Assembly: GCA_904063045.1 (NCBI GenBank)
Contig: CAJFCJ010000002.1
Location: forward strand, 2,289,891-2,353,890
Origin: Dimorphilus gyrociliatus
Taxonomy: Eukaryota > Animalia > Annelida
Direction: 5' to 3'
Length of the DNA: 64,000 bases
In this document: positions 12,870-64,000 of the stretch, piece after piece
Numbering within the stretch: position 1 is the stretch's first letter
Layout: every line of letters begins with the position of its first letter
Notes under the pieces: generated by a model
Told to the model about the DNA's origin: nothing
Seen by the model: only the letters and a program-made list of their open reading frames with translations
Database searches by the model: none
Made by a program: the position numbers and the translations under genes

Positions 12870-12883
12870 GCGCCATCTAGTGT
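12870..12883 (-). promoter_or_regulatory. CTCF-type motif between the divergent ZCCHC4 and claudin-like genes
   Basis: ACACTAGATGGCGC on the minus strand. Confidence 0.65.
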
Positions 12884-13307
12884 TTAAAAACATATATTTT
12901 TTTTACTAAAAAGAAAAACAATTGAACAACGAATACCTAATCAGTACTCGATTTCTAAGAAATCAACACAACAAGTAAGTTTTATAGGGCATTTTTTAGT
13001 TTTTACAAAAAGAAATAGTTTTTTCAGTTGTGTAATTAACCTATAGGAAATGTCTATTTAAAAGTGATGAGCGATAAAACCAGTATGTCACGTTTAAACA
13101 TCGATTTTAAGGTTAAATAGTGTTAGAAATCTCATAAATAAATATATAATCTGAATATATATGATCAATTTTTAATTTTACATGAAGATGAATGAATTTG
13201 AACGAAATATTGATTAATCACCTTTTTCACAGGTGTGCTTTGTATTTTGGATCTCTTATGAAGTAATAATTTACACATAAGCATTCATTTCGGAATAAAG
13301 ATAGACG

Positions 13308-14587
13308 ATGGCCAGCAAATTGGGTGCTCAAAGTCATGTTATTGCATGTGCTCTCTTCGCCTTATCTATTGTATGTTTTCTCAGTCATATAGTATCGTTT
13401 TCCGTTGATTACTGGTACGAATCAGAGCCTGAACTCTCAAGGCCTTTTGTAAGATTGGGCCTACATCGAATCTGTTTTAATAATTTCTACGAATCCCAAG
13501 GGGACGAGGGTAATCAACCACCCTATAATGGATGTCACGAATACATATCAAATATTCTTCGAGACATAGAAAGACAGATAATAACTGGTGAGATAAATTG
13601 TCAATCTAATTTATAATCTACCATCAAGTTACCTTTAATTTTTAACTATATTATAATTGTCAATCTCTCTCCTTTTTAATTCTGTACAGACTGGTTCTCT
13701 AGTGTTCGAACAATGATGATTATCAACGTTCCGCTGCTGGCTTGTGTTATGTTTATTAGTATTCTATTTTTTGTGGTTATAATACTACAAAAATGCAGGA
13801 AAACTTTTTCAAAACAATCCAGATTAATACAAATTTTGTTCTTCTTAATTGGTGTGGCTTTTCTAGCTGCAGGTAAGTTGTTTATTATTAATTTTACAGT
13901 TAAATAAGAAAGTTAAAAGTAAGAGATAAAGTTTCGCACAATAGTTGTTTTTCTTTTCTTCCTTTTTTTGAACATTTTAATTAATTCTAGAAAATTCAAG
14001 ATCTAATCAGTTTTCATTTTCTCCTTCAAATGTAGCGTAAATGCTATTTTTGTTGTTCAGTTGAGATATTTTTGTTCATTTATAGCATGCAATTAAATTT
14101 AAATCTCAGTTCGATTATCACATACCTGTGTGTCCCCGTATACGCACCGATTGTAAAAGAACCAACTTTATAATAGAATAAATGAAAGTTTCTTTTTACC
14201 TAAACGAGCCATTTATACGCTCAAAAGAACCACGTGATTGCTGTAAAATACCTTGATTTGTTCTACTGAAATGGATGCTATTCCTTTGTATTATTTTATT
14301 TTAGTATGCTAAGATATTTCTATTCCTATACAGCCCTGATCTCCCTAATCGCTTTGATGACATTCTACGCCAATTGCCAGAATAGAGAATGGCTACCGAA
14401 CCGACATCAGTACAAAGCAGGACATCGTCTGGGCTACGCCTTTTGGCTACAATGTGCCACTTGCGCTTTACTTTTTATTAGTTTTATTCTGGCCATTATC
14501 GGAGGCGTTTTCAAGTCGATAGCCTTGAGCGAAAAACGAAGCGTTCTTTATTCTGAGGACATGGCTTTAAGTGGCCGAAGCATTTAA
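13308..14587 (+). CDS. Claudin / PMP22-EMP-MP20 superfamily four-TM protein (invertebrate septate-junction claudin-like)
   Basis: Exons 13308-13587, 13690-13872, 14334-14587. Four hydrophobic segments; first loop VDYWYES...LGLHRICF..GC matches the W-GLW-C-C signature; REWLPN..LGYAFWL precedes TM4. A probable non-coding 5' exon ends near 12975 (gtaagt). Confidence 0.85.
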
Positions 14588-15457
14588 AACCCCCCTATTA
14601 TTCTTTTAATTCAATGTTTATTTTAACTATTTATCTTTTTTTTAAGTGAAAAAAACAGCAAAACAAATAATAAACAAAAAATTATTCTATTTGTTAAATA
14701 TTCTATTTCCTTCCACCTATATTTCTCCTTTTTTTTATTATTTGCTCACTGTTTGTTGCATATTAAATTAGATTAGCTGTTATTTTTATTCTGTATTTTT
14801 TTTATAAAAAAAAAAGAAAAAAAAACAACTCATATCATATTAATTCGATTTTAACACGATGTCGTGACTTTTTTCCTTATATAATTTGTATCATCTTATA
14901 ATCGTAATAAAAAACAATGTAGTCTTTGAAAACAATTTAAAGACATTAATTTGAAACTTTAGTACATGCTTTTCAAACAATGTTGAACAGAGTTTTTTCA
15001 TGTGTACGTTTACAATACTAATATTATGGTACGTTACCGTTGCTTGTCCCTCTTCCCTGAGGGATTGAAAGATTTCGTGTATAATACTATTAAAATTCCA
15101 TACGTCTTTATTCCCAATTACAAAACAAGAACATTTTTTCTAGTTTAAGTAACAATTTCATTGACAGTTCAAAAGAATTGAATATAATTTGAACTAAAAA
15201 CAAATCCTTTAAGATCTCCAATTAAATTATTGCGCTTGGAAAGAAATTAGTAATCTTCTCTGGTATGCCTTTTTCTTTTCTAACTCTTCCTACGCCTTCC
15301 TTTTTCATTGTATTTTTAAACCTAATAGGCATTCCTATTATTTATGAGAAAATAAACTTTACTGCACATAGGCCTGGGACTTGTTAATATCCTGATTTCT
15401 TCTTAATGGGTGCTTAGAGTGAACTATTTATATTGCTACATATATACATATATGTAA

Positions 15458-15488
<31 letters not shown>

Positions 15489-15792
15489 TGTGGTATATAT
15501 GCATCTTTGTAACGCCACTTATTCTACAACAGTCATACAGAAAAGGAAAGAAAGAAAACCGTATAAATAGACTTTTTTTCTTCTTTCATGAAAAAAAATG
15601 AAAGAGTGAGAAGTGATAGTAAGGAGAGAGAAAGATAGAGAGGAGGGGAGGAGGGAAGGGGTGGATGGGAGGTTTTTTCTAAAAAAAGGATATTTGTCTA
15701 TTCAATGTATTTTTTCTTAAAGAAAAGGGTGCAGATGTGAGGTCAGATGTGCTTACAATACACAACAATTTCTTCAACCGTACCGAATCCAA

Positions 15793-18143: not shown

Positions 18144-18256
18144 ATTTTAATTATTCACTAGAATTCTCCATGCTTAATAGAGATGCTGCATGCGCATTTA
18201 TACTTTATTTAAAGGTCATCCTAAGCCTACAATACTAGCTAATTATAGTTGAGTCT

Positions 18257-18270
18257 ACGCCATCTAACGG
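18257..18270 (-). promoter_or_regulatory. CTCF-type motif 5' of the sulfotransferase ATG
   Basis: CCGTTAGATGGCGT, identical to the 14-mer at 44587. Confidence 0.6.
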
Positions 18271-20119
18271 TTTCATAAGTAATAAAGATAAGTTGCATAG
18301 AAATTTGACAAAGAGAATATGCATCTGTTTATGAAAAGGTTATTATAACCCTAGCTGCATTCATACAATCAACATTAACGGGTATTATTCAAAAATAAAT
18401 CGACTTGAATAGCTTTATAAAAAAAATACTACAGCGACCAATAAGAAATTTTGACTGAGGTCCTTAATATTCCGACGAATAAGCGTCGAGCTAACAAATA
18501 ATCGAAAGCCCGGCGCCATTTTACGATCAAATGAACTCAGCTGAACTCAGTTTTGAAGGAAATTAGCCGAAATATGCCCAAATACCGCAGGTATGTGTAC
18601 TCATTTTATACTTTGCTTACTGATCAATCATAACATAAGCGTTAAAAGTGCGCGATCGTCTTAGTAGCAAGTTTATTCGTGATAATCGCTCTTGTTGTGA
18701 CGGTCGATCGGAACATATGTGAGTTCTCTTTAAAAGTTTAAATAGATCGGAATAACTTTTGGACAGTTGCGTTAGACATCGTAAACATTATCCAGGTATG
18801 GCATAAATATCGTTGAAAACGGTAGTATCGAGTGACTAGTTCAATACTAGTCATTAAACTAACAATGAATCTGTTTGGCGTAGATGCTTATCAATTCAAC
18901 GTGTACACAAAGGCTCATGTTTACAGTAGCAGTGGAAGTTTGTATTAAACTTTCCCAAACTTTTTCTCAATTTGATGGTGAAGAACATACTGTTACACGA
19001 CCCGAATGAACGCGGGAAAGCTTGTCCCTTGAATTAGGTAGAATTTAAAGTAAATTTTAACGCAGCACCTGGCTTCTAGCAGTCGCACCTGTTAGTTGCT
19101 AAGGATTTATTTACGAGCAATTATTACAAAGTAATGATGGAAGAGAAATCCTACGTAATCGCTTAGCTCGTTAATCAATCAAAATCTAATGAAGTTCAAA
19201 AGCGAAGAAAATTCCTCTATTCAATTAGTTAGGTGTCCCGCGAGTACGGTAGACTAGTTAGTCTTTGATCTGTTGCTATTTTCGAATTTGATACGAATTC
19301 CCGCTAAAATCCCTGTTTTATGTCAATTGTTTAAGTCGGTAATGTACCGGGTTGTGTTTTTTTTCATTGAAATTTCTAAACCTTTCCCGCGGGGCGTTTA
19401 ATTTGTCCAGATAGCGATAGGCTCGCGCCGTTACACTTTCACCGAAATTGACTGTAAAAGTAGCACTTAAAGATCTTTGGCATGTTCAATAATTGTTGTA
19501 TTTTATGAATTTTTCTGGTTTGAGATTGTATTTTAACTTGTTTAAACATAGCACGCGTAGTTTTCTAATGAAAACTTTACTTTGCTTGACGCATGCCTAT
19601 AAGTCTCTACGTTATGACAACGTTTCTCAAGGAATACCTCTATTATACGTCAAAATTGAATGTAATTAAACGCGTCGTCTACACCAATAATTATACTCCG
19701 TATCGGTCTCGAGTTTTTCAAACATCTCTTTGTGGAAAGTAGATGATTACATAATCATCAAAATGATAAAGAATCTAAACTGACGAGTTCAAGTTTAACT
19801 CTTTCTTTTTGATCTGTTTTCTCGATCTTGCTCTACTCTCTGCCCCCTAGGTGGTTTTATAACTTATAGGAAGTAAGAGAAACAGGGAAAATGACCTTAG
19901 GCAGTCTTTAATACTTTGGTTTTTTGACACTTTCGCTATAAAATTTTACTGCAAAACTAGCACCTGAATGTGAATATTTGATTTGAAAGAGAAAAATCCG
20001 GCTTTAATTATACGCACGCGCATTTCTCTCTTTGCAACCTTGTTTGCGTGCTAATTATTCAGTCGGTGGCGAAATGAAGAATGTGACCGAGTGAATAGGA
20101 AGTTGTCGAGATAGGTTTG

Positions 20120-20133
20120 CCACTAGGGGGCGG
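20120..20133 (+). promoter_or_regulatory. CTCF-type motif upstream of ARHGAP19-like
   Basis: CCACTAGGGGGCGG, near-consensus; an opposite-orientation weaker site at 19841-19854. Confidence 0.7.
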
Positions 20134-30806: not shown

Positions 30807-31937
30807 AACTTCGTTAGTTAGTATGAATTGTGAGAAAGCAATTAGTGTATTTACTTATCGATTATTTTGCTAATTGATACTTTTATTATGAATTTTATTT
30901 GCAAAATATTTCGTTCCCTAAGAGGTAATATTCTTTTTTTTTAGTCTTTCTTATTTTAAGTATGCAGTTTTTTAGACGTTTAAAATCTAATCCAATTAGT
31001 TATAAATATCAGGATAAAAGAATAATTATAAAGAAACGCCCATTGACTATTAGCTGTAAATGACGGCATTTTAAATAACAAATTAATACTATCGGCTTTA
31101 ATCATAGGAAATTTTAGAGAGAGAGCTTTTGTTGTATAGATTCTGACGGAGAATCCTTCAATTTCAATTGGACAAATGTGAAGAGCTAAATAAGAGAGTG
31201 GAGTAGAAAAAGTATCTATTTTTCTATTAAATATCACCAATTATCACTTGAAATCATGTAACAATTTGGAATTGGAATTTTGGTATGTAAGTTTATTCAA
31301 GCGATAATTTAGAATCTTAAATATTCTTTGATGTAAAATTCGTAGGGCGACAGCCCTTTCCCCTTCGGTAAGTGAAAAATTAGGCAAAATTTACCCTAAA
31401 AGATACCCAATTCAAATAAGCACCAGATGTCGTTCTAACGGTTTTTCCGCGCTAAAACAACCAACGTCTTAAAAGCCATTAAAAAAGCATTTAAATTACT
31501 CTAAGACGTTAGTTCCATGATTTCTGTTGTATGTTAGAATTAAATATAATAAAATGTATTAAGAATTATAAAGAAATAAAAAAAAACCTCTTTTTTATCA
31601 AACTGATTAACAATTGTTGATAAAACGGAGAATGGTTAACAAAAATTTTTATTTGGTTTTTATTGCCATTGAAAACCTTTAGGCCTGAAATATAACGCTC
31701 TTTTAATAGTAATAAAATAGGGGACAAGAGAAAACCATCGAAAGGATTTAGGAATTCGCTATAATTTGCGAAATGAGGGAAAGTTTCTTAATGACGTCCG
31801 TAAAAGAAGAGGACAACTAAATAATATTAATTAAACAACGTTTACCATTGTAGAATTGTATTTAAGAAGAGAATAAGGAGAAAGATAGAGAGAGAGGCTT
31901 AAAAAAGAAAAAAAATTATTATTTATTCTAAAACTTT

Positions 31938-31951
31938 GCGCCATCTACTGC
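31938..31951 (-). promoter_or_regulatory. CTCF-type motif between the orphan ORF and the BNIP2-family 5' region
   Basis: GCAGTAGATGGCGC; a second site GCACCAGATGTCGT (+) at 31420-31433. Confidence 0.65.
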
Positions 31952-32116
31952 AAAATTGTATCTCTATGATAACGCTAAATTATTCGCTTATAAGGGACGA
32001 AGAGATGTTTGCAACTCATTACGACTTTAGAGTAGGAGAAGCCGGAGAATGGTCTGCAATTATTTAAATACCAAAATTTAATTGAGAAAGCTAGGATAGA
32101 TACGAAGGTATATATT

Positions 32117-34146: not shown

Positions 34147-37100
34147 ATGGCGAGTCAGCCTGTTATCATAAAATGTGACGATGTCGTCGTTAATGAAGAA
34201 GGATCTAACGATGTTGCAGCTGGTATTGGGAAGGCAGAATGTGGAAATTCTAGCAGTATTCTAATTGACTTCGATGCTCCTGAGACACCGATTAATGATG
34301 ACACGAATACTACTAATACCACCTTTCGTTATGATGTTCTGGCCGATATAGATTTTACTAGCAATAATAATAATATTAATAATAATAACAACAATAACAT
34401 CGGTAATATTTCCATGGCTAATTGTGAAGCGCTTCCAAATGTCGAGGAAGCTAATAAGCTCGCTCTGTCGAATCCAAATCGTTTGGAACGTGCCAGGAAA
34501 AGCGATTCGCACCTGCATGATGTAAGCAACCTTCTAATTCCGAGAGTATCTAGATCGCATTCAACTTGCTTTGATAGCAATGCTCTTCATGATGCTGTGG
34601 ATTTTTGTCTTGCCAGACAATTAATTAATAAAGCCCTTGATAATTATGAACCGCCCACAAATGATATTGGTGACAATTCAGAAGAGGATGTTGAAACACG
34701 TTACTTACCTTCCGTCGACATAATGAGGGGTAGTATGGAAATGATTACTTCCGCCACGGAAGATATTGAAAATAGAAGTTTTATTATGTCAGAGGAAGAG
34801 AGATTTTTAGACGAGAACGAACCTATTATTGCAGATGTGAAATTGGAACGCCTACAAGACACACGAGTGAAAAAGAAAAGCGCCATTAACTTTGAAAATT
34901 TAAATCTAAATAAAGAAGAGGACCTGCTTAAAATAGCTGACCAGATTGTACAAGAATCAATGATGAAAGGAAACACAATGTTCCAAGACGGAAATGATAG
35001 GGTAAGTTAAATTATTTAACGGCAGATGGCGCTTGCTTCTGCCTTTTACTTACTAAAAGCGTCTAAAAGTAGGCCTTTCGTAAATATGATGCGCATAAGC
35101 TAAACGAGGTCAATATGCTGTTAGTGACCGCCCATATCCCAGCTTCCGCTCACATTCTCACTCTGACAGATTCCGTCTTCCCTCGGAAAATGAACAACCG
35201 TCGATTATCAAATTTCAAAGGACCTTAAAATACAGCAGATTGTAGTTCTTAAGACTCATATTTTCCCCTCTTAAATCCAATCCTTCTGTTTTTTTTTTAC
35301 ATATAAAAATAGATATTTGCTTGTTTTTCTCTTTCAAACTCAATATCTAACTACATTTCAAGTAACTTTTTATGGTTAATATAAAAATAACAGAGTCTAA
35401 TGCCTATAGCTGTATTGATCGACGTCAATAGATGCTGGAGGTGGAGGGAAGGGGGGGGGCGTAGCAAGCTTACAGTCTTTGCTATCTATTGCAAATTTTT
35501 CCAAGGGCATTACAGGCTATCTATAACTTGAAAAATAGAGTATAATAATCGAATAGAAGGAAGAAAGCTTACATTCCTTAAATCAGTTAGATTATATAAT
35601 AAATGTGATGTCATGCAAGTAACACTGTAATTAACGTGTGTCAAGGTGAAACAAATTATACTTCATCCACCAAAAATTATTTTACAGCTCAATCCCTAAA
35701 ACATTTTTTTTTAGTTGTCGATGCTTTTAGTTAAATGTATTATTAATGTAGGTGGAACGCTATAATAGTTAATATGCATTAAATATCAATAAAATCATTA
35801 ATTTCATATATGGTGAAAAAAGCATAGCTAGTTTATACACACGCCTGAAATTGTATCGCAATTCTCTATGTGCATGTCTTATTACTCTCTCATCTATTTC
35901 GCTCTCTTCTAACCGTTCGTCGTCACTGTTGTTTTTGTATAAACATACATACTTTCTCCAAGAATCTTCTTCTGATTCGCATCCTTCTATCTTCTCATAA
36001 TTTCACACTTAGTGTTGAGAGAATATATTTCTATTCACACCTATCTCATTTTTCTCCGTTAATGCCATTTCGTTTGTTTTTTATTTTAAATTCAAAGTAC
36101 AGTGGATGGGCGTTTTATGTCTGTTTGTCTTTCACAGTAAATGACCTATTGCTTACTACTTTAGTGAATGAGTAAATTTTACAATTTATGATATTCGCAT
36201 AAAATTTTCAAAGCTAGCTACGCCCCTAGACGCCGTCAGTAACGCTGCTAACGTACGCCACTACCCTTGCATACCGTCCATCGATATTTCGTGGCGTCCC
36301 TTCGATTGCGATCAAAGAAAATTGTATTGGAAGAGACATAGTTTTGATTGAGGAACAAGAATTCTTTACTTTCATCATTAGAAGTGTTATATTCTAAAAT
36401 AAAGATATTGGTACTAGAGGATAATTAATAATGGATTGATGGATTAAACGCGGAATAAAAATTCGGCATTATTTATAGAAAGGTTTTTGAAAAAAGAAAT
36501 TATATGAATATTTAAGCAAATAATTGAAATATTGCTTATAACAACTTGAGTTTGTGAAAAATTGAAAATATTCTTTGAATTTCGAATAGTCTGAGGCAAT
36601 GGTTTATTCTTTTATCGCAAGTACATTCGACGTTGCTTTTCCCTTTGCTATTTGTTCGTAAATCGATAAGTAGTAGGCCTTCAGTCTGTTTGCAATATAG
36701 CGCAGTGGAATATAAAAAACGGACGGGATATGAGAGAGAATAAAGACAAATTTGTCACTGTTTCGTCTACGGAACACCCATTGAGTCAGGACGACTTCGA
36801 GGAGGAATATATTAATAAGGTCAGTAACTTGGGTAAAGCGTTATGCGAAGAAAACTTATAGGGCATCATTTATAAATGATCTTCATTAATTTTTTTGCGT
36901 TCTATCACTGTTTAAATGATTAGTAAAACACGAAAAATATTTCATATACTGAAAACAGTCAGCTAACTAGGACAGTACAGAAAACCAAACCTAATTTCCT
37001 AACTGTTCATTAATTACTAAACTTCCGGAACTATCTATTAACATAAAAGTATGAAGAATTCCTATAATGTTCTTTGTTGGCTGTTAAATTGATTGAAAAT

Positions 37101-38996
37101 CAACTAATAAGGCAGATAAGCTCATTAGAATACGGCGTTGATTTTGGGTGTCGTTTCTACCTGACATGTCAGTCACATCTACTAGTTCATCAACGGCATC
37201 TAGTACTTCTTGTCGTGTACATTCACTAAGTCTACTGATGTCATCCACCTCTATTCGTTTTTCCTTGTAATTTGTGAAAGGTGGCGAAAGTTTGTTGCAT
37301 CCCGAAACCGGATTACAATCCAACCTTGTAAAAGTATTCGAAGTGGAGCACAATAGACGCTTACGTCGTTTAGCAGGTTTACGTTTTTTCGTTTGATTGT
37401 CAGGGGTCCACTCGTCATCCGAAACTTCTAGGCGAGCTTTCGTGTTAAATTCTTTTTTCTTTGATTTATTTAAATTAGTCTTTGATCTTTTACCGTCTTT
37501 GCGATTGCAGCAATCTAGACACTTACAGAGACTTGTACAAGCTATACTGGCTTCGTAGCATTCACAATATTTCTTACTACATCCTGATCTTTTACAGTTG
37601 CAACCTTTATAGTGCGTCTTTTGGTCTACTTTTGAGCGAAAAGCGTTTGGATTACGTTCCACACACGCTCTAGTTGCTGAATCTCTTTGTAGAGGATATT
37701 CATCTGTATTCATACATCCATTGCAACTGCACCACGATCCACAGTACTCACTGCGAGCAAAACAATCACAGTAAAGCTTTAGGCATCGTGATTTTTTACA
37801 GTTACAAGGCTTTGTCGACGATCTTAGACGGTCGCCATCTTGATATCGTAAAATAGGAAAACAAAGCCCGAAAGTTGGTGGCGACAAGCCACCAAGAGCC
37901 GGGAAAGGATTGAGCGTTTCGTTGCAGTAGGGGGTGCATATACCTGGTGAACAATTGAAGGAATGAGTGTCCAGGGGGTGGAAAGGCGGTTCGTCTGTAA
38001 ATTCTATAGAAACGCAAAGGAAACACGTAATATACACGCAAGAGAAAAAACAACAACAACACAAATGACTCATTATAATAATAGAACACTATAATTAAAT
38101 ATTGTCTTAAAAGACATAAATTATAGTAAAAAATAGTGTTGATTTATGATAAATGCTTATTATTTACTTGGAACGAAATTCGAGTAAAAAGAACTTACCA
38201 GCGGGCATCATTGTTCTAGAATAAAACTAATTAGAAACGCTCTAAAAAAGAATATTTTGACGTAATGTAATTTATTTTTTACGTAAAACAAAAAGAATAC
38301 ACTTGTTTCTTTTCCGTCTATCATCAATATCAAAGTTGATAACGTTAAGGGATTTCTTTTTTCGGAGGAAAAAAAAAGAACGTTACGTATTTAAAAAAAA
38401 AAAAAAAAGAAGGAATTTAACGTTCTCTCCTTTCCTTCTTTATAATAAGAGAAAGGAATTGAAAATCGTTTGACGAGCGAATGAACCGTAAATAAGGCAA
38501 GCGTGTAAAATAGAAATTATTCTATTTTTGCAATTACAAAGCTGATTTTCGGTGTTGTTTAAACGATTTAAAGGCTTGGGTCCAAAACTAAAGTGTCAGC
38601 TTAATATTTCAATCTTTATTTATACTTTGATGTCGGCCTTCAATTTTAATATGTAAATTAGAGGTTTATTAGAGAGGGAGAGGATAGAGAATGAAAAGAT
38701 AAAGAAATAAAAGAAATAAAGGTGGAAAGGGAGAGTTTGAGTAATTCCTGAATAATTCTATACTGTTTATAGATGAGAAGACTGCGAATAATTAGATTAT
38801 TTTTCCAAGTTATAAAGAGATAAATAATTAAGGGCCAGGGAATAATAAGTATTATAATTGTAGATAATTTAGGTATATAATTTGCGAGATATTGTAAAAT
38901 GATCGAAAGTTAGGGGAGAGAGTTAAAAGAGGGTGTGTAACTAAGTAATATAAGTGCTAAGGGCGTTGCAGCTGACCAATGAATATTATATTCATA

Positions 38997-39032: not shown

Positions 39033-41114
39033 TTGTACTATTATACTTAAGTATTTAATATCATATTACTAAAATATTTTTACTTCCAAACCAAAATAGG
39101 AAAATGAGAATCGTCCTACAAAATTGGAAAGGGAACAGTTAGACTCTCCATCCGATCGGGTTCCGGAAGATATCGCTCTTAAAGCGGCCCTATCCCCTGT
39201 TGATTCTGGTTAGTAATTCGTCTATTTTCCTCTATCTTAATTTTCCTATTCTTTCTGTCTTCTACCGTAATTAATTACTGTATATCTGCCACATTTCTTA
39301 CTATTGTTAAGTTCACTGTTTACAATCTTTTCTTCCCTTAAAAAATGTTTAGATTTGATTAATTATACGCCTAGAAATTGTATGGCTCTCTTTCTCTTAC
39401 AGCGGATAATCGACCGAATAATATCGATTGCCCTAGAAAGAAAAAGATTTTACCAGATTTTCGTCTCTTAAGCGAAGAGGCGGTAGAAGAGACAGAAGAT
39501 GACGATGAAGAATCTAAAAAAGCATTGTACGTATATTTATTTTTTAATTTGTTAGAAAGCCTTATTTTCTAATACCGAAACGTCTGATTCCTTTTAATTT
39601 AAACATAGCTTCATTATCTACTTATCATTATTTAAAATTGCTATATACGCTTGAGATTTTATGATATAAATATCAGTTTCATTCTTTATTCAGTTTTATA
39701 TTTATTGTTTTATTGTATTTTTTCTCTTTTACCTCCCTTTCTCTTCCTTACTCTTTAATTTACATGTACAAACTCTTTCTCCCTCTGCTTTCAGGCCTAA
39801 TGGGCAAGAATTTACGCTAGAAAAAACTATGTTCGAAGAAAAATCTTTAGAATGCCCTCAAATCGATATCGATTTACAAGGTAACTGTAAAATGCACTTG
39901 ATTAATACTGTATGCATTAATAAAGATGCAAACAGAAATTCCTACGTAAATTAGGTTTATTAAATGTGCACGGTTATTGCTCCTAAAATAGATAGTCCGT
40001 CAACACCCGGTGACGCCGTTCCGGAACTCGAAGAAGATAGCAAAGAAAAACGATGGAGAACTGTTACGATTGCGGATAAGCATTATCGATTGGATATGAA
40101 AGTAATTGAACCGTATAAAAAAGTTCTCTCGCACGGAGGTAAGGGAAATTTTAACTTGGGGTATGATGGGTAACGCCATCTGTTGTCTAATAACTTGAAA
40201 GAACGTTATTGAACTAACTGATGTTATCTGTACGAAACAGGATACTATGGTGGTGATGGATTTAAAGCTATTGTTGTATTTTGTACGTGCTACTTACCAG
40301 ACAAGAGACGGAAGGATTATAACTATGTGATGGATAATCTATTTCTTTACGTTGTATCTACTCTAGAACTACTTGTCGTAGAGGACTACATGATAATTTT
40401 CTTCCACGGTGCAACACCAAAGTATAAGATGCCTTCGTTAGTTTGGTTGAAAAAATGCTACGATATGATTGATAGGAGGCTGAAGAAGAACTTGAAACGG
40501 CTTCTAATAGTTCACCCAACTATATGGCTTAAGACATTAATGCTTATGATGAAACCATTTATAAGGTAGTTATTTCAACTAAAAAGCACTAGTAAAGAAG
40601 TATCGAGTTTAATTAAATAACGATCTCGCTCCTTTTTTTTATCGGATGTTTTACTCATTACACTGTTCGATAATAATCGATTTCGTAATGACAACGAACA
40701 AAACGGCTTTAGTAAATGCCATCTTTATAGTCTTTTCCTTTAATCTAATTTTTATAATTATACTTAATGTTAAAAACGATAATTGTTGTTTTTCCATTCA
40801 AGAAAAATGTAAATATTTATGTTAATATCAAACATACTTAATTCTTTTCTTGTTGTTTTTTTTATTTATTTTGCAGCTCAAAATTTCGCAATAAAGTAGA
40901 TTACGTAAAAAATTTGAAAGAACTTAGCGAAAAAGTATCGACCGAATACGTTTACGTGCCTGACGAAATAGTTGAGTAAGTATCCATCTATTAATCATTT
41001 AATTTAATAATTTAATTATATGAATAGAATTAATCATTTTACCGTTTTATATAAAATTTTATCTTTTATTCTTATAACAGATTTGATAAAAAATTAAACA
41101 AGGAAGAGCGCTAA
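34147..41114 (+). CDS. BCH/CRAL-TRIO domain protein of the BNIP2/PRUNE2/caytaxin family with a long acidic N-terminal exon
   Basis: BCH exons 39992-40138 ([29 protein letters not shown]), 40241-40565 ([37 protein letters not shown]), 40877-40975, 41081-41114. Linker exons 39100-39208, 39403-39526, 39795-39880. The acidic exon 34147-35001 ends phase 0 at a gtaagt donor, matching the phase-0 acceptor at 39100; that link is inferred. Confidence 0.85.
35019..35032 (+). promoter_or_regulatory. CTCF-type motif at the start of the BNIP2-family large intron
   Basis: ACGGCAGATGGCGC. Confidence 0.6.
36706..36819 (+). CDS. Candidate alternative first or cassette exon of the BNIP2-family gene
   Basis: Open frame (W)[37 protein letters not shown] ends at aag|gtcagt (phase 0); ATG at 36730; phase-0 acceptor gcgcag at 36705. 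Confidence 0.55.
37084..38211 (-). CDS. Tesmin/TSO1-like CXC (CRC) domain protein, tesmin/LIN54 family, nested antisense in the BNIP2-family intron
   Basis: Two CXC domains ([19 protein letters not shown]...CMN; [20 protein letters not shown]...CCN) joined by RNPNAFRSK. Mini exon 38211-38199 (MMPA, g|gtaagt) splices in phase to the acceptor at 38003. Confidence 0.92.
40173..40186 (-). promoter_or_regulatory. CTCF-type motif in a 102-nt BNIP2-family intron
   Basis: ACAACAGATGGCGT. Confidence 0.6.
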
Positions 41115-44229: not shown

Positions 44230-47200
44230 ATGTTCGCCGCTTTCCTGCTCTGCACGCTCTGTCATATTGGAACTAGTATACAATTTCGAAGTGTTTTACA
44301 GTCAGACGACGACTATCAGGATGGTCATCTATCTGATAATTACTACGACAGGAGAAACAGGTTCTCTCTTTTTCAAATGTATACTTTCAATAGGAAAACA
44401 TTATCCGCTTTTCTTCGCTTCATCGCTCTCAGTATAGTCGAAAACTCGGGACAAGCCAATAGCTGTTGTCTATAATGATAAGCGAAAATGATAATTCATT
44501 TTTATTCCCCAAATCCTTTTTAGTGAGAAGAAAGTATCCTCTAATGTTCATTTAATACTGCTTTAACAAGGATGGTTGATACATAACCGTTAGATGGCGT
44601 TATATAAATTCATATTTTGTAGTATATTACATTAAAAACACAGTATTAAGCTTATACTTTTTACAAATATACTCTTTAAGAGTGAATAGACATTAATGCG
44701 AAGAATAGCGAAAGAAGATATTGTGAGCAAAACTATGTGTAGTACGAGAAAGACAGACAGCAAGAAGCTAAATATGAAAGAAAGTAAGATTGAAAGAGAA
44801 GAAGAGAGGAATAAGTTAGAGTATGACTGAGACAGAGATTGACACCAAGAGAGAGAAAAGGAGAGGAGGAAGGAAGAAAAAATTAGAAGCATAGACAGTG
44901 ATGTGGAGAGAATAAGTAAGAATAAATATGGTAATATGAAAAATAAAGACTCATACTAAGAGTAAGAGAGAAAGAGAAAGAGCGAAGAAAGAAAAAAGTC
45001 ATCATGCTTTTTCTCGTCAAGCAAACGTCACTCTCTTTTTTATTTCCTCATTAATATAAAATAGATGCCAGGGACTGTAATATTAAATTTAAAAAAATTA
45101 ATGGACTATTTGTAAGAGTGTGTTAAAGAGAAGAAAAAATTAGACACGTTGAAGAATATACTTTTTAGCTAGTTTGCAAATTACAAACAAAAAGAAAAAT
45201 CTGTTTTAAATATATTGTTTTAGAAAAGAAAGAAAACTAAAAGTTCTTTTTCTCTTTCTACAATTTGTTTGTATAATTTTTAATGGGCTGTTATTTTAAA
45301 ATAAGCTACTTCCGCTATTTAAAGTTTATTACTTCAGTAAATTAAGTTTTTATTAGAAAAGGAAATAGCCGGAGGATCTAGTTTTACTTTATCTTACCTC
45401 TTTTCATGGTTGGTAATAATCGATCATTTTCTAGCAAATAAACAGCTAGTTAATTCCGACCTTTTACGCCCCTGGACAAATTTTTATTCATTAAGTCGAA
45501 ATCAAGTAATGAATCATATTATTAACCGACAGAACGATATTAAATGCATATCGCACATTTTTTCTGTCATAACCCTCTTCATTTAATATCATTTAATGGA
45601 AAAATATATTGTAAAATGATCGTGTATGATATTCTCTTCCTTGTAGTTTTCTCCTTAGTAAAAGATTGAGCCTGGGAGAAAGGTCATTTTCCAAATTAAA
45701 TTAATTTAACAAGAGAATCAGAGAAAGAAAATTGCATTTTTTTTCAGTTTCCCTGTCAGCTGTTTATCCTCAGTTCTAGGTGCAGATTTACTTCTTAGGG
45801 CAAAAACTTTACAAGAATCTCTAAGAGCTCTACTCCATCTAACGGTCTGCTGTCATTTCTCTATTCAATCGAGCCTACCACCAGATGGTGCTCCCTAGAA
45901 CCAAAAAACTTCGCTATCCGTACGCATTCTGCATAGTTATATAAAATATTAACGAACAAATCGCAGCAAAAATAAATCAAATTTGTTCGACAACCCGATC
46001 GGTAGAAAATTGTGTTTGCCCATGGTTTTTTGTAACGTAGGCCAAAATACGACCGCAAAAATTTGCAGACTGCTCTGAAATAATCCGGCTTCTATTCGCA
46101 GCTTTTACGAAGGGGATAGTGCGAACGTGTCTCGGATTCTGGATTCACTACTCCGAGGATACGACAAACGGATTAGACCGAATTATAGGGGTATAGAATG
46201 AGAAGCGTCTCTTAATTAGCTGACGCCTTATCATAATATCTAGGGGAAATTTGCTCTGAACCATTTATTATCTTTTCTGATTTCTTAACTGATCAGGTTC
46301 ACCCGTAGAAGTTGGTGTCACAATGCACGTACTAAGCGTCTCTAGTATATCAGAGGTTGATATGGACTATACAGTAGACTTCTACTTCCGACAACACTGG
46401 ACAGACCCTAGATTGGCTTTTGACTATGACGAAGAATTGTGCATTAGTACAGAGATGCTTGATCGGATGTGGTGGCCGGATACATTCTTTGCCAATGCTA
46501 AACTAGCCAAGTTCCATTATGCGACAACAAAGAATCACTTCCTCCGAATTAGGCCGAACGGCGACGTCCTGCATAGTCTTAGGTATAAGATTCCAGTCGC
46601 GAGTTTAACGGAACTGATTATGTTTATACTGGCCCGCAGGCTGACCGTGACCGCAATGTGTAATATGGACCTGACATTCTTTCCAATGGACAGCCAAATA
46701 TGTTCTTTAGAAATCGAAAGTTGTAAGTATATTAACCTAACACTTTTAAGAATAAACAAAGTTTGTCAAGGAGAGAAAAAGAGATAAAATAAATCCTTTC
46801 CTTTCGATTCAGTTGGTTACTTAATGAAAGATATTCATTATAAGTGGTTAGAAGAGGGAAAATCTGTAAAATTTGAAAAAGGAGTACAGATGCCCCAGTT
46901 TGTCATACACAGTCATCGACAAAAAGAAAAAGTTATTGGGACGAGTACAGGAAATTATTCGCGACTGGCTTGCGAATTTCATTTTGTTCGAAGTATGGGC
47001 TATTATATCATACAAATTTATGTCCCTAGTATTTTGATTGTTATATTAAGCTGGGTATCATTTTGGCTGTCAAGAGACGCCGTCCCAGCTAGGGTTGCTT
47101 TGGGTATTACAACCGTTTTAACAATGACAACTCTTATTTCAAGTACGAATGCTTCTTTACCGAAGATTTCCTATCTGAAATCGATCGACGTCTATTTAGT

Positions 47201-47600: not shown

Positions 47601-50299
47601 GGTATTCTCCCCTTCATTCTCCTCTGTCACGTGATCCATCAAAAATAAAGCTTTACATCATTTCTGATATTAAAATATTGCTACATCGATAAACAATTTT
47701 TTGGCGTTTTGTTTAATTAGACATGACAAGCAACTGACTCCCAAGAGAAAACCATCTTTTTTTTTATCGGAAACTCATCCTTTTTGTGATATTCTGATAT
47801 GATTTGATGATCAGAGTGTTATTTGTATGCTGAAAGAGAATGGAAAAAAAACGGATAGAGTATTACCCTTTAAAGTACTAACTGCTTCTTGCATAAGGCT
47901 TAAATATAAAGTGACACCGTATGGTATGTGACGTTTATGAAATACCTCAAGAAAGAGAGACAGCTCAATTAAGGTTGAATAAATAATTGAAAAAAAAAAT
48001 TCAAATAAGCCGTTTAGGTTTACTCGTTTTAAAAATTGTATTTAAATATTCATAAAGGCTTAAATAAATACAAATATTATTGACGAAAAGGAAAAAAAAG
48101 GTCATTTTACGTAGTTTATTGCGAAAGTCCGGTCGCAAGTGGAAATTCGACAAGGATTCAATCAATATTTACAAGCGCACTAAGCCAAGTTGCTATCGAT
48201 CGAATAACAAACAATGTTAATTTCTTTTTTCCTTCTATATATCTTCGAATTACGTGATATTCAGTCATCATCGAATTTCGATAGATGGCGTTTTTCTATT
48301 AAACTTTTTTCATTTAATCCAATATTTGTTTATATATAACATTATATATAATTTTGTTGTATTAAAATCCTTAAAACTAATAGGCTAAACGTTATTCTTT
48401 GTAATCATAGGAAACTACTTTTTTTCCCTCCCTACTAAAGATGCAATTAATAAAAAAATTTCTTTCCTTTTCAATCAAATCAATCACTACTCATTTCTTA
48501 ACTAAATTTTATTACCTTTTCTCATAATTTAATAGAAACTATGTTTATTTATATAAATATCTAATATTTGTTTATATTTATATATGATTTATTATCCTAT
48601 TGTTGAAAGAGAAATTTAGTGGGAGGAAAAGAGAAAAGATCTTTCTTCTTGCATAAGCAATTGAAAGTCCTTCGTTCGGTCGAATGATCCTATCAGCAAG
48701 ACTAGAATTACCCCAAAGAAAATTTTCTGTGTAATGCACTCCAGGTCCCGTTTGGGGAGTAGTTATCCTATCAAAGGGAATGATGATAAAAGTTCGATAG
48801 GAAGATGTCAACAAAATCTTTATTAAACAGTTTCTTAATAATTTATAGATATTTTTAACTATTCTTTTAATGTTTAGTGTAAGAAAGCAAGAAGACAGGA
48901 TTTTTTATGCTAAGCTATTTATATCTTCATAAATCTTCCCTCTCTGTCTCTTTTTGTCCTCCTCCCTCCCACTCTCTCTCTCTCGCTCTCAGTGCTATAA
49001 ACTTTATCTACCATCTTCTATAGACAGTATACTATATAAGAATATACTATATATGTACATATATTTATTTATTTAAACATTTGTAATATAAAGCGTTGAG
49101 TGTTTAATAGGAAAAACTCTTCAATTACTTTAGGTTCTGCACAAGTTTTAGAATATCTTTTGTTGCCGAAAAAGGATAAAAATAATAATAAAAAAACAAC
49201 AAAGAAATGTTTAAAGGAAAAAGCCTCTTGAAAAATAAACAACTATGACCTAAATACATCTTTTATCTTTTAAAAATACATACTTGCATATATATTAAAA
49301 TTTATACCTCTTAATAGGCCAATTCCTCTTACCTTATCCTTTACCTTTAAACCGTTAATAATAAACATATTTTTAATTTTTATATTATTAATTTGAAATA
49401 AGGCATTAAACTTAATTAATGCTTTATTTTAATTAACGTATTGTTTATTAGCTGTTTCTTACCTTTTCAAGCTGTTTGAATTATTCTAAATTTGGTATAT
49501 TGATGGATATTGGAGACATTTCATTTGAAAATTTGATAACAAACTAATTCCGATCGCCCCTGGGATAAATTCAAATTTAGAACTTGTAGTTTATTTGCAA
49601 TCAAATATAACAATATTCATATTTTGCAAGGGTATTTGCTTTCCTCGTTCAACTGATAATATTATATAATAAGATAAGATAAGCCTCTTATTAATTCAGA
49701 GGACGAGTTCAAGGCAAGACAAACACAAAAAATTGATCTCTTCTTTATCAGTTACGTAAGAGAATGCCATAAGATAGGCGATTAGTTCTGTATGTACAGA
49801 ACACAATGTACCATTAGTGGACAAAAGAAAGCGACCTCGTCACATAGCCTGTTGCGGCTCCTTGACATTTGCTTAACAACATATTGGAATAAATTATGCA
49901 AATTCCTCAAATTTCGTATCCAGGGTAGAAATGTAAATAATTAGCACAGAGATAAGAATACATCCTTATTCCACCCCTGAAAATCTGTTTATTATCTTTT
50001 TTATCATTATGAATGATTAAGATTGTAGATACAATAGATTAATTACTAATTTTTGAATTAATTGCTCAAGAATTATAATAACATTTATAACGACATTGTA
50101 GATTTATCGGATTTGATTATAGGCTAAGGCAATTAAGTCTATAAGCTCTTACGTTATTCGCTATAACTCTTAGGTAAAATTATCTCCAAGGCTAAATAAA
50201 GAATTAGTGCGTGGACTTGGTATCGTTACGTAAGAGTTTAATGACCAAAAAAATAGTTTTCGGCCTATTAGGATGTCCAAAATTAGTTTAAAAAATTTG

Positions 50300-50330
50300 T
50301 ATAAAAGGCTCCAAGTTGCTTCAAATCAGC
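50300..50330 (+). promoter_or_regulatory. TATA box and initiator-like element of the vitellogenin gene
   Basis: TATAAAA at 50300-50306, TCAGC about 26 nt downstream, ATG at 50356. Confidence 0.7.
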
Positions 50331-50355
50331 ACGAAGCAGTGTTTGAGGCATAATC

Positions 50356-57017: not shown

Positions 57018-58070
57018 CTATTGTATTCCGACAGATGGTGTTTTGCAAACTCTGATGAATGGCTTTTTAAGGAATTCTCTAAAATCTAGATTAAAAATTA
57101 AAAACGAAACAGGAGTACCTATAACACTACAATTTAATACTGAAATAGATATTAAAGAAACACTAGTCATAGATTTGTAAAGTCCTTCTATAATAAATGG
57201 AGACAACGATATTAGAGAAAAACAACTTAAGGTAAATAAAACTTTTGTGGCCTTAATTGACTTTTTTACTGTTTCGAATTTACTACTATTAACTTTATGC
57301 TTGACTAAACATATCTTAAATATGATAAATGTATAAGAAAAACATTGTAAAAAAAGACAGATGGCGATATGAACAGCTAGAAGTTGAATAGCAATGCATG
57401 TTTCGAAGTAGCAAGTCCATGTTGCAATATTCCGACTTTCTGCTATGCAAATACAAACAATATAAATCCCAAAGACAGTAGTAAAAAACTTTCTATATTT
57501 ATTTATAGATGATATTAAAAGAGTGTGATACAATCTATCAAATGCAATTATAGTCTGCAAACCAATAGTAACAACTAGTCCTATAATTGATGCTAAATTA
57601 CCTGCATAGGAAGGAATTTCGTCTGTAAACTAAATAAATAAAAGAAATAGTTAATGACAAAAAAGATTAATAGATTTATATAAATAATCTTTCAATACTA
57701 ATGGTAGAAAACTCACAAATTCCATAGTTGTGTTCCTCCAGGCAAAAATTATTCCCGAAGAATTTATACTTATAATAGTTAATATTAGTAATACAACTGA
57801 TAGAGATAAGATACAATTCATAAGTAAGTATATAATTATTATCCATTTTGAAAAATTATCATTGAATTTCTTTGAGACTTTCACAAGAAATATAATTAAT
57901 AGAAGAGAACCAAAAAAGCCAAGTAGATTACTGAACGTCGCAAAAATTTGATAAAATATATTATTGAGTTTATTAAACCTTACAGATAAAATATTGCTTT
58001 CTGTTGTATTTATGATAGTTTCTGTCATAATGTAAGAAAAAAAATACCATAAAATATTCTTATAAGTCAT
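57018..58070 (-). CDS. Divergent class A GPCR-like 7TM protein (orphan / chemoreceptor-like)
   Basis: Exons 58070(or 58028)-57717 and 57629-57018, phase 0. N-terminal NTT sequon, about seven hydrophobic segments, IAFDRL at the end of TM3, KATKVLF..SLSPF in TM6, NLDFREFLKK helix 8. Confidence 0.72.
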
Positions 58071-58709
58071 TATATAATAAGTTTATTATAAAATGTGTAA
58101 ATATAAATCCATTATTATAATGGCATTTAATGACTCCATTGACAAGAAATACGGAAAGTTGTTTTTAAATTGAAGTTTTGAATATTTTATATTGTATTTA
58201 GTTATTATTAAATATATATATATACATGTATATGTATATATAATGTATATTTAAATGAATTGTATATGTACGTATATTTACATGTGTATATATGTCAATA
58301 CTTGTATATTATATCTATATTTACGTAAATATCCTCCGAGTTAAGAACATATATATACTAGCGAGCTTGAACAATCAAGTATAAAATAAAATTTTATTTG
58401 ATAGATGTCGCTTTCGACTTAGATAATCGATCTAGTTTCATATAGGTATTAACGATCAATACTTTCACGCTCTCATCTTGTTCCACTTTGTTAGGAGGAC
58501 CCCTTTGAAACAATAGAATAGGAAGGAACTATTCGATAATATAGATTAGGTAAGGTTAATCAATTTAGCATTGATTCATACAGACTCCACCCATTCTTTT
58601 TTACTCTTCCATCTGTATATAAATATATTATATATGTGCTTGCAAACATTCTCTCACTCATTTATTAAAACTGGACAACGGCTTAAACAAAAGCCACCAA
58701 AGTTCTTAA

Positions 58710-60633: not shown

Positions 60634-61768
60634 TTTATATGCAGATGAAAATTATCTAATTTCATATAAACAAATAGTTATCAGCATCTTAAGTCTTTCA
60701 ATATGAAAAATATGTACTTTAACAGTTAAAAAACAAGCCAATAACGTCTATCTTGATAAATAATGCTCGAGTATCAACATCTTATGATATTTTCATCAAT
60801 TTCATTAAAACTGTCTGTAAAGGATAGTTTAATTTTATATTACATTAATAAGTATATTTGAAATGATATTCAGGTGAACGTCTAAAATATTCACTGTTTT
60901 ATATTATTAGTATTGAAAAGTAAAATTGATAATGAATAATCAGAATTCCTCTTCCTTAATCCTTAAATGTTTAATTGTTTAGTGTATTTATACAGTATAT
61001 CTTTATGTATAATTAATATGACTCTATTCATATACTGTATATGAATCTAAATAAATCTATGATTCCTTTTTCTGACTGGGAAGTTGAACATAACAATGAA
61101 AAGTTACAATTTAGTAAATGAATTATAAATTTGATAGATAGTTTAGGTTGTTTTCTCTGGTGAACAGACACTCTATGTCGTTTTCGTTAGCTAAAACACT
61201 TGATTGAATTATTCGATACTTCTCTATTCACTTAGTGCTTGAATATATTAAGTATAATTTCTAAGAAATAGAGGAATATCTATTATTGACAAATTAATTG
61301 CAATAACAAGTTTTCGCGCGTATGTGAGGTTCTAGCAAAAAATATAAATGAATGTACACACACCTGATTTTTCTGTCTGTATTAATTTCTCCTAATATTT
61401 GTGTTGTTTAGAAAATTAATATTAGTATCGATGCTGTATGATAACGTTTAAGATAGCATTTGTAATATTACTTGACTTATTCATATATTACGCCAGATTC
61501 ACGTGCTCACCTATACAATATACTTTCAATTTATAACAATTAAAATAGTTCTTTAAAAATATATTTATATCAGACTTTTCTAAAGTTATTAAAAATATTT
61601 TATTGATTTTAAAAAATACAATTTTTGTTTTCTTTCTATTGTCAAAATGTTATCGAAAAATGTTTATTTAACATAAGCGCGCAATAATGGAAACGGTAAA
61701 GTAGTTCCGTGTTTCCGTTTCTGCCGTTGGAGCCATTACTACCTTTTTTACGCTCAAAAATAATCAAC

Positions 61769-64000
61769 ATGGCAGATAATTCTCAATCAAATCCTTTAAC
61801 TACACGAAATTTTTCAAAGGTAATCATATCCTTGGAAAATATATTACTACCGAAAGAGAAATTATCACCAACGCCGTCTGAATTGGACGGGCTAGAGCCT
61901 GATATTGAAATTCAATTAAGAGTTTTAGGATGTGAACTAATACAAACTTCTGGAATTCTTTTGAAATTACCGCAAGTATGTAAAAATATACCTTAATATA
62001 TAGTGTTTAAGATGTCAATTTTTAATCTTTGATTATTATTCAGGTGGCAATGGCTACTGGGCAAATCCTTTTTCAAAGGTTCTATTATTCCAAATCATTC
62101 GTTCGACATAACTTCGAGGTATTTGTGTACATTTTTATATAATACCCGCATTATGTTTAAAAAATATACAAATTTTTTCAGGTAGTAGCCATGGCTTGTA
62201 TTAATTTAGCTTCTAAAATAGAAGAAGAACCCCGTCGAATAAGAGACGTAATTAATGTTTTTCATCATATAAAGCAGGTTAAAGAGGGAAAGTGAGTTGA
62301 AGAAGCCTTGATTTTTCGTTCTGTAACTAATACAAAGTTTTTACTTTACTAGATCGATCGAACCGATGATTCTTGATCAAACATATGTCAATTTGAAAAC
62401 CCAAGTTATTAAGGCGGAGAGACGAGTATTAAAAGAATTAGGCTTTTGCGTTCATGTCCAGCATCCACATAAGGTGAGCTTTGATTCTTCTAAGGGATTC
62501 TAAAAGAAATTGTATTAAAATATTTACTTATCGTATATCGACAATTTTATGCAGCCATCCCAGACTTGAAAGATCAGTAGAAAAAGCGAAGCATCTTTCA
62601 ATCAGTTTTTTTTGCCTATTTTCCGCCCACAGTAAAATTCTTATATTGAAAAATCATAACCTTAGCTGAAATTTTCCAGATTATAGTGGTATATCTTCGA
62701 GCTCTTCGACAACAAGAAAATAATTCATTAGTACAATCTGCTTGGTAAGTTTCTATTCTAAATATTATGAGACCCTGTCCATCGTTACTCGTTGCCTAGT
62801 TTAAAGCTGCTTCCAATCTTTCGAAATCAGCTAACAAAAAAAAAACGAAAAGGAAATTGTAATTTCAATATGGTCTTCGCATAACAAAAAAATACATAGA
62901 TATATATTTATATATTTATATATATATAATTATGTTCGTAAAAGACATTAGATTAGTATATTTATATTTGGTCGAAAATGGAAGTAGCATGTTAAAAAGT
63001 ATTTAAAAAAAAAAGTTAAAATTTGATTGTTCAATGTTGACTTTATGGCTTTTACCTAACCAGTTAAACAAGAAAAGTTGTGGCGAAATTGAGCGATTCT
63101 CCCCAATCATGATTTGGTGCCACATCAAGATTTTCGACATCTTTTCTGGTGTATCAGGTGGTCCTGTACGCCTAGCACAGATTCATTTCTTTCTAATAAT
63201 ATTACAGTAATCTATTTTGTCTTATAGCTATTCCTACAAAAACTATTATTCAAAATCGTAATTTTTAAAGATAAGGATTTACGGTAAAGTATAATCATTT
63301 GCTTGAATGTTGCCGTTCAAAACATTTGAATGACAGTTTTTTTTGTAAAACATGTGATAGATGTTTTACCTTAGCAACGCTTTTTAAAGATCTACGTATT
63401 CAATAATTAAAACATGCTTAGAGCAACCTCAAGAGGAGTGCTAAAGCTCTCAAACTTCTCTTCTCCGACTCAGATGATGTCAGGTAAAGACAGATATCTT
63501 TCTATTATTTAATTGCCTATTCCTAGATAAGACGGACGAGACTTGAAAATATTTTTTTTAATTTAAAAAAGTTTTTATTATTTTCCTTCAGCTGGAAAGA
63601 CATTGTATATTTTCTAATATAAAATAGATATAGTAAATCTTTAGATGGCGATGCAAAGGTTGAATATCTCTTTTCTATGATGTGAAAATTCTGCTTGTGA
63701 ATAACCCAATACAGGGTCTCTTAACGCATTATAATTACTTGGCAGAAGAATATGTTTTTGCACGTAAATTATTTACCCACAGGAATTATATGAACGACAG
63801 TTTGAGGACGAATTTATGGCTTCGATATAAGCCAGAAAGTATAAGCTGCGCCTGTATATTTCTGGCTAGTCGAAATATGCAGGTTCCCCTCCCCAACTCT
63901 CCGCCATGGTACCGAGTTTTTGGAGCAACAGACGCTGAAGTAGAAGATATCGCACTGACAATACTTAATCTATACGAATTGAAACGCATGACGGCTGATT
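61769..64000 (+). CDS. CCNL1: Cyclin L (5' part; runs off the window end)
   Basis: Exons 61769-61975, 62044-62118, 62182-62291, 62353-62473, 62680-62744, 63783->64000. [90 protein letters not shown]. Confidence 0.97.

Follow-up and report, generated by a model that had tools for sequence, protein, structure and literature searches.

The closest described system is Dimorphilus gyrociliatus itself, whose assembly comprises about 78 Mb in about 350 scaffolds and in which the CTCF motif was the most abundant one in approximately 10,000 ATAC peaks (PMC7854359; Martin-Duran et al., 2020/21, Nat Ecol Evol). That work demonstrated accessibility and promoter bias, with ATAC-seq motif enrichment and an aggregate footprint published for the sites: the motifs were mostly located at promoters, stood singly and lacked any directional arrangement, a CTCF orthologue was reported, and the authors preferred gene regulation over an architectural role (PMC7854359). 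Thus, the excess of CTCF-type motifs in D. gyrociliatus is already known (PMC7854359). The sites considered here represent the same motif class, with the same abundance, single placement near gene 5' ends and absence of directionality, and differ in nothing essential; as the basic observation dates from 2020, no new phenomenon is added. The present analysis goes beyond it in counts made for each motif position across the entire genome, and not in ATAC peaks alone, and in two negative orientation tests (with TATA-like words and with splice donors), and it provides a cleaner motif grammar for D. gyrociliatus as well as ranked sites in one well-annotated 64-kb stretch, a possible experimental test bed. 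The question at stake is how CTCF worked before vertebrates linked it to loop extrusion, and a spiralian whose compact genome holds thousands of CTCF-type sites close to promoters, together with an intact orthologue, is well suited to addressing it.

According to a 2026 preprint (10.64898/2026.10.19.759930), CTCF of the fly, the sea urchin and the sea squirt favours promoter-proximal sites and a short motif that ends in a 3' C. The D. gyrociliatus motif resembles this Drosophila-type form in its short core without a strong 5' module, in its preference for 3' C and in its promoter-proximal position, but differs in that 3' T reaches the raw count of C and that A/T dominate the R/K positions. With vertebrate loop anchors (CCASYAGRKGGCR, arranged as convergent pairs at TAD borders) it shares the core register, and the YDF cohesin-interaction motif of the protein is kept, whereas most of the 5' CC has disappeared (only 49% of sites retain C at -3), the sites lie near promoters and not distally, and no convergent arrangement is seen either in the window (i.e., the whole 64-kb stretch of DNA that was analyzed) or in PMC7854359.

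Abundance of the motif in the window and in the genome

The 8-mer AGATGGCG was matched 10 times in the window, while dinucleotide shuffles gave a mean of 0.55; no shuffled window held more than 3 copies, and 0 of 100 shuffles reached 10. The chance estimate of 0.4 per window made in the initial annotation was about right. Its tally of eight non-coding matches plus one in the putative GPCR ORF also stands, but not its total of nine, as the match in the CXC-gene ORF at 37833 had been overlooked. When up to two mismatches were allowed, the 13-mer CCASYAGRKGGCR had 12 matches in the window versus 3.9 expected, a number attained by no shuffle; about a third of the matches of this class, to which the site at 19841 belongs, would be due to chance. 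The whole genome (assembly of 77.9 Mb, 349 contigs) contains 2907 copies of YAGATGGCGY and 151 of the reversed control word, an approximately 19-fold excess. Seven such strict sites fall within the window, which is about three times the genome-wide density (one per 27 kb on average), and all seven carry C at -3, which is absent from both 8-mer matches inside ORFs. The individual matches are as follows.

12870..12883, minus strand: strong site with C at -3, TAGATGGCGC, between the divergent ZCCHC4-like (-) and claudin-like (+) genes and upstream of both, at 838 nt from the ATG of the former (12032) and 425 nt from that of the latter (13308)
18257..18270, minus strand: strong site with C at -3, TAGATGGCGT, oriented like the Gal3ST gene, whose start codon follows 114 nt downstream
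19841..19854, minus strand: weak site with two mismatches, TAGGGGGCA core with the 5' part off-register, Gal3ST/RhoGAP intergenic region
20120..20133, plus strand: perfect vertebrate-style core CCACTAGGGGGCG, 0 mismatches; the RhoGAP gene has its candidate first coding exon about 690 nt downstream (candidate ATG at 20810)
31420..31433, plus strand: weak site with GTC instead of GGC (1.7-fold class)
31938..31951, minus strand: strong site with C at -3, TAGATGGCGC, intergenic, 2.2 kb upstream of the BNIP2-like ATG
35019..35032, plus strand: strong site with C at -3, CAGATGGCGC, assigned to intron 1 of the BNIP2-like gene because it lies about 10 nt beyond the GTAAGT 5' splice site closing the first coding exon
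37833..37840, minus strand: 8-mer match in the CXC (tesmin/LIN54-type) ORF, with A both in place of Y and as the 3' base, flank classes that are weakly enriched, and therefore probably a chance or weak site
40173..40186, minus strand: strong site with C at -3, CAGATGGCGT, midway along an internal intron (about 100 nt) of the BNIP2-like gene
44587..44600, plus strand: strong site with C at -3, TAGATGGCGT, at the 5' end of the gene for the ligand-gated channel; a candidate signal-peptide ATG precedes it by about 360 nt (exon assignment uncertain)
45878..45891, plus strand: weak site with GGT instead of GGC (GGC-mismatch class, 1.7-fold), in the 5' part of the channel gene
48278..48291, plus strand: strong site with C at -3, TAGATGGCGT, 678 nt beyond the channel stop codon, upstream of vitellogenin
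57359..57366, plus strand: 8-mer match, antisense in the putative GPCR ORF, without C at -3 and with 3' A, and therefore probably due to chance
58398..58411, plus strand: weak site with GTC instead of GGC (1.7-fold class), in the 640-nt divergent GPCR/ankyrin intergenic region
63638..63651, plus strand: intermediate site with C at -3, TAGATGGCGA and a 3' purine (A), in a large intron of the cyclin L gene

All 13 of the 14-mers listed in the initial annotation were recovered with position and strand correct. The word itself is real and enriched, but four of these sites (19841, 31420, 45878 and 58398) have to be regarded as weak.

Motif grammar and the CTCF orthologue

The motif logo was built from genome-wide pattern counts, each compared with a reversed-word control. 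At the 3' end, C (1439 versus 20 in the control, 72-fold) and T (1468 versus 131, 11-fold) are nearly equal in raw frequency, but the enrichment is far greater for C, while the 3' purine class is enriched 3.7-fold (606 versus 164). Replacement of the 5' Y by R (the AAGATGGCG/GAGATGGCG class) leaves a 5.5-fold enrichment (948 versus 173); 5' of AG, Y is commoner than R by about 3:1 (2907 versus 948), although A is the most frequent base, and Y was T in 61 of the first 100 genome sites counted by hand. With any base other than G at the G of AG the enrichment is gone (693 versus 570), and a mismatch in GGC leaves a class enriched just 1.7-fold. The other variants at the R/K positions (GG, GT, AG) are enriched 9-fold (1437 versus 156), A/T being favoured there, unlike in the vertebrate CTCF logo. 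C at -3 is present in 1432 of the 2907 sites, i.e., in 49% versus 16% in the control, and a count by hand in 100 listed sites gave 52. As a working consensus, these counts yield C-N-N-Y-A-G-(A>G)-(T>G)-G-G-C-G-(C>T). Fitted in register to the CCASYAGRKGGCR core, the nine 3' positions are as predicted, and the 5' module is down to one C; in the window, only the 20120 site matches the full CCASYAGRKGGCR 13-mer perfectly. The motif is the short 'invertebrate' form of the CTCF motif, with a strong 3' core, the CCAS module cut to a single C and a preference for a 3' pyrimidine.

The gene of the CTCF orthologue is located at about 1131085-1132625 of contig C1 of the D. gyrociliatus genome (G000). 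The lead to this locus came from a degenerate pattern obtained by back-translation of a peptide, and the identity was tested by PDB comparison, performed exon by exon with the exons unjoined. Three zinc-finger exons align, in order, with residues 218-359, 355-413 and 422-552 of human CTCF (7w1m_H; E values of 1e-62, 3e-45 and 7e-55, respectively, among the top PDB matches), covering human zinc fingers 1-10 in order. The recognition helices of fingers 3-7 are conserved with respect to human CTCF, and the N-terminal YDF motif is kept. Judging from these alignments, D. gyrociliatus clearly encodes a CTCF orthologue with conserved DNA-reading fingers 3-7.

Candidate readers of the motif

It is likely that the sites of the window are instances of the genome-wide CTCF-type motif, read by the species' own CTCF and having a promoter-proximal role. 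With its fingers 3-7 conserved, this orthologue would be the most likely reader of the motif, presumably occupying the sites. Binding by another sequence-specific factor, e.g., a lineage C2H2 zinc-finger protein resembling CTCF in the core that it recognizes, appears unlikely. The genome does hold at least several hundred C2H2 candidates (942 at first look), the CCAS 5' module is far weaker than the vertebrate one, and our search of the literature found no ChIP or CUT&RUN of CTCF in D. gyrociliatus; however, all tested positions follow the prediction for the CTCF core, the helices of fingers 3-7 are retained in the orthologue, and HOMER assigned the de novo motif of the ATAC peaks to CTCF (PMC7854359).

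The assignment to CTCF rather than to YY1, made already in the initial annotation, is borne out by the obligatory G of AG, the upstream Y, the C at -3, the enriched R/K variants and the encoded CTCF orthologue. YY1 accepts any base at the n of its site AAnATGGCG. Sites of YY1/Pho, or translation-start contexts (AAG ATG GCG), would account for the ATGGCG core, common to YY1 and the motif, and for the enrichment of the AAGATGGCG/GAGATGGCG class, one word of which lies in the CXC ORF at 37833; still, this reading is very improbable, since the motif requires G at the position that is degenerate in YY1, Y exceeds R upstream in spite of the abundance of A, a conserved C stands three bases further upstream, and none of the window sites is at an inferred start codon. 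Hardly any weight can be given to a fragment of a dispersed repeat, to a bias in mutation or composition, or to a proneural bHLH E-box (CAGATGG), even though this AT-rich genome shows an unusual usage of words, TAGGCCTA is over-represented as well, and sites with Y = C contain CAGATG. The reversed word is 19 times rarer and dinucleotide shuffles fail to reproduce the count, while the T prevailing at Y in the hand-counted sites breaks the E-box. The 100-nt flanks of the sites are similar only at the background level (mean local alignment score of 9.7 for 94-nt flanks versus 8.8 for random windows) and were diverse in 100 listed genome sites; being unrelated, they argue that the motif is not a repeat fragment, an origin by which the initial annotation had proposed that its reading could be refuted. 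The YY1/Pho site, the E-box, the repeat fragment and the start-codon context were accordingly rejected.

Position of the sites and their probable role

Exons were found via long open frames and Pfam matches, codon-usage scoring being dropped since it was dominated by vitellogenin, and 'promoter-proximal' in the window refers to the distance to start codons deduced from ORFs. Most of the neighbouring genes named in the initial annotation were confirmed by Pfam, namely the claudin-like (Claudin_2), Gal3ST (Gal-3-O-sulfotransferase, E value of 1e-25), RhoGAP, CRAL-TRIO/BCH, ligand-gated channel (Neur_chan_memb), vitellogenin, ankyrin, GT64 and cyclin genes. No Pfam match was obtained for the ZCCHC4-like, GPCR and 'orphan' pieces. 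The CXC ORF has a TCR/CXC Pfam match. The strong sites of the window are located 0.1-0.8 kb upstream of start codons or in and near first introns, with two in internal introns. The window scan found no site in the divergent EXTL/cyclin L promoter region or in the region upstream of the ankyrin/CAP-Gly gene.

The insulation of individual genes at their boundaries, suggested in the initial annotation, does not follow from these data: the strong sites are not specifically placed between gene ends, some promoter regions have no site, and regulation is preferred over architecture by the authors of PMC7854359. The sites would be single elements in short stretches of accessible DNA, most of them immediately upstream of gene 5' ends or immediately within them and a minority in internal introns; their most likely role would be promoter-proximal regulation of the adjacent gene, perhaps combined with a degree of local enhancer-blocking where genes are closely packed, loop anchoring of the vertebrate style being less likely. 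A reuse of CTCF as a per-gene boundary, in which single 5' sites would block the spread of cohesin or enhancer activity so that each gene or pair forms a micro-domain, would fit the retained YDF cohesin-binding motif, but we consider it doubtful. To our knowledge, gene-scale insulation by CTCF has been demonstrated in no animal.

Five of the six unambiguous window sites are oriented like the downstream gene. We take this shared orientation for chance, because the genome-wide proxies show no coupling of motif orientation either with TATA-like words (159 versus 181) or with the splice donor GTAAGT (19 versus 19). The sites at 40173 and 63638, both in internal introns, have no obvious promoter anywhere near them. 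The intron with the 40173 site is followed by a BNIP2-like exon with a CRAL_TRIO_2 Pfam match, and the site itself precedes the nested CXC gene, whose orientation it shares, by 2.1 kb.

Abundance and grammar of the motif

Ten exact copies of the 8-mer AGATGGCG are present in the window, as against a mean of 0.55 and a maximum of 3 in dinucleotide-preserving shuffles. When all 8-mers of the window were compared without prior choice, only simple repeats and the palindrome TAGGCCTA were more over-represented. A search for the IUPAC core CCASYAGRKGGCR that tolerated at most two mismatches gave 12 matches vs 3.9 expected. The over-represented motif is real, and all 13 CTCF-type 14-mers of the initial annotation were found where it had placed them. 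Its tally of eight non-coding AGATGGCG matches and one in a GPCR frame also holds, while its total of nine becomes ten with a match that it had missed, at 37833 in the ORF of a nested CXC gene. Since the 100-nt flanks of the ten matches resemble one another only to the extent that random windows do, an origin of the motif as a fragment of a dispersed repeat, which the initial annotation itself had raised against its reading, is ruled out.

Genome-wide counts covered 77,897,245 bases (77.9 Mb) in 349 contigs of the D. gyrociliatus assembly, in which the window occupies C2:2289891-2353890; the published assembly comprises ~350 scaffolds and ~78 Mb (Martin-Duran et al., Nat Ecol Evol, PMC7854359). 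The strict motif YAGATGGCGY was counted 2907 times vs 151 for the same pattern reversed (19x), i.e., one site per 27 kb on average. The seven strict sites per 64 kb of the window correspond to about three times the genome mean, a density similar to that over the initial 0.5 Mb of contig 1; local gene density is the probable reason. Positions 1-12000 of the window contain zero motif sites and consist mostly of simple repeats (TA and CT/GA) together with open frames of low complexity, with no convincing genes except ZCCHC4-like exons at ~9.7-12 kb; the rest of the window is gene-dense.

The grammar of the motif was probed by genome-wide pattern counts, one position at a time, each against the reversed control.

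Genome-wide counts of motif variants (motif; reversed control; ratio)
3' base C: 1439; 20; 72x
3' base T: 1468; 131; 11x
3' base purine: 606; 164; 3.7x
5' base R replacing Y: 948; 173; 5.5x
Non-G at the G of AG: 693; 570; 1.2x
GG, GT or AG replacing AT: 1437; 156; 9x
Mismatch within GGC: 2319; 1352; 1.7x

A C three bases upstream of the Y (-3 C) is present in 1432 of the 2907 sites (49%) vs 16% in the control. As read from these counts, the register and information profile of the motif are those of the CTCF core: AG and GGC are invariant, the R/K positions are degenerate, the 5' module CCAS is represented by its second C, and the 3' base is a pyrimidine. YY1 tolerates any base at the position of the motif's G and prefers A at that of Y. 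The obligatory G and the preferred Y reject YY1 and bear out the initial assignment to the CTCF type, which is well supported. The RAGATGGCGY class, which is YY1-like, is itself enriched 5.5-fold genome-wide (948 vs 173), and its members may be genuine YY1 sites, weak sites for CTCF or contexts of start codons. A proneural E-box was also rejected, because 61 of the 100 first-listed genome sites (hand count) start with T, not C. The grammar fits the preference reported for CTCF of fly, sea urchin and sea squirt, namely for a short motif whose 3' terminal base is cytosine (2026 preprint 10.64898/2026.10.19.759930).

The CTCF orthologue

A degenerate pattern obtained by back-translation of a CTCF peptide, used as a lead only, had a single match in the genome. 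The three zinc-finger exons at this locus (L032, on contig C1) were compared singly with PDB sequences, and they matched human CTCF (7w1m_H) in order.

Zinc-finger exons of the predicted CTCF, matching human residues and E-values
Exon 1: residues 218-359, 1e-62
Exon 2: residues 355-413, 3e-45
Exon 3: residues 422-552, 7e-55

Fingers 3-7 have recognition helices nearly identical to those of human CTCF, the helix of finger 7 spanning an intron according to the splice junctions, and the N-terminus of the predicted protein keeps the YDF cohesin-interaction motif; YXF is kept across bilaterians (10.64898/2026.10.19.759930). That the genome encodes a CTCF orthologue was reported previously (PMC7854359). 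A strict TAGATGGCGC and an adjoining GT-variant CAGGTGGCGG are located at C1:1130062-1130095 (L032 ~3063-3096), some 1 kb before the start codon (L032 4086), and the word AAGATGGCGC lies ~0.5 kb upstream of that codon, at C1:1130541-1130550 (L032 ~3542-3551); autoregulation of CTCF through its own upstream motifs is possible.

Placement and ranking of the window sites

Genes were identified by Pfam analysis of long open frames, and first exons served to infer the start codons.

Sites in the window
12870: upstream of the claudin-like ATG by 425 nt and of the ZCCHC4-like ATG by 838 nt
18257: Gal3ST ATG 114 nt downstream
19841: off-register
20120: perfect canonical 13-mer; candidate RhoGAP ATG ~690 nt downstream
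31420, 45878, 58398: mismatch in GGC
31938: BNIP2-like ATG 2.2 kb downstream
35019: BNIP2-like intron 1, ~10 nt beyond the 5' splice site (donor strand ambiguous from sequence)
37833: AGATGGCG match in the nested CXC-gene ORF
40173: internal intron, ~100 nt long
44587: channel gene, probably intron 1
48278: upstream of vitellogenin, 678 nt past the channel-gene stop codon
57359: AGATGGCG match in a putative GPCR ORF
63638: large intron of cyclin L; intermediate, with 3' A

The ambiguity at 35019 arises because GTAAGT brackets the site on both strands (window 34990-35060): the + strand copy precedes it by ~10 nt and the - strand copy follows it by ~12 nt. No motif sites were found in the divergent EXTL/cyclin L region of the window or upstream of its ankyrin/CAP-Gly gene. 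From these positions and the two site-free regions it follows that the sites are found preferentially at 5' gene ends rather than at the ends or boundaries of genes in general; the initial annotation had described them as lying at gene boundaries and in introns. Five of the six unambiguous window sites point in the direction of the downstream gene, a pattern treated as chance; genome-wide, with TATA-like words and GTAAGT as proxies for transcription direction, orientation was unbiased (159 sense vs 181 antisense within 18 nt of TATA-like words, and 19 vs 19 within 19 nt of GTAAGT).

All seven strict window sites possess the -3 C. The matches at 57359 and 37833 are probably due to chance, since both flank features are absent from them, and the significance of 31420, 45878, 58398 and 19841 is doubtful. 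A 16-mer, AACCGTTAGATGGCGT, is common to 18257-18272 and 44585-44600, and the extended word recurs in the genome, e.g., at C1:2507269 and C8:647269 among the matches listed; its CCGTTA part, read on the opposite strand, is the Myb-type element TAACGG. CGAT and CAAT are also frequent directly upstream of the core.

The abundance of CTCF-type motifs in D. gyrociliatus is already published and not new: among ~10,000 ATAC-seq peaks the CTCF motif was the most abundant, lying mostly in promoters, as single motifs with no clear directional arrangement, and gene regulation rather than chromatin architecture was suggested as the role of CTCF (PMC7854359). Promoter-proximal sites are likewise preferred by CTCF of fly, sea urchin and sea squirt (10.64898/2026.10.19.759930). 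A literature search found no ChIP, CUT&RUN or Hi-C data for D. gyrociliatus. The initial annotation had inferred that CTCF would insulate individual genes, which the data do not support but which may still hold; published and present evidence together favours a promoter-proximal role of the sites. What remains of value here is the position-by-position grammar and the ranking of sites along one 64-kb stretch.

A second over-represented word

The 8-nt palindrome TAGGCCTA occurs seven times in the window vs 0.54 expected (1134, 3921, 17462, 29623, 30049, 33556 and 43327), and 4597 times genome-wide vs 634 for the reversed word. Since the flanks of its occurrences are dissimilar, it is regarded as a second over-represented word, to which a dimeric factor may bind.
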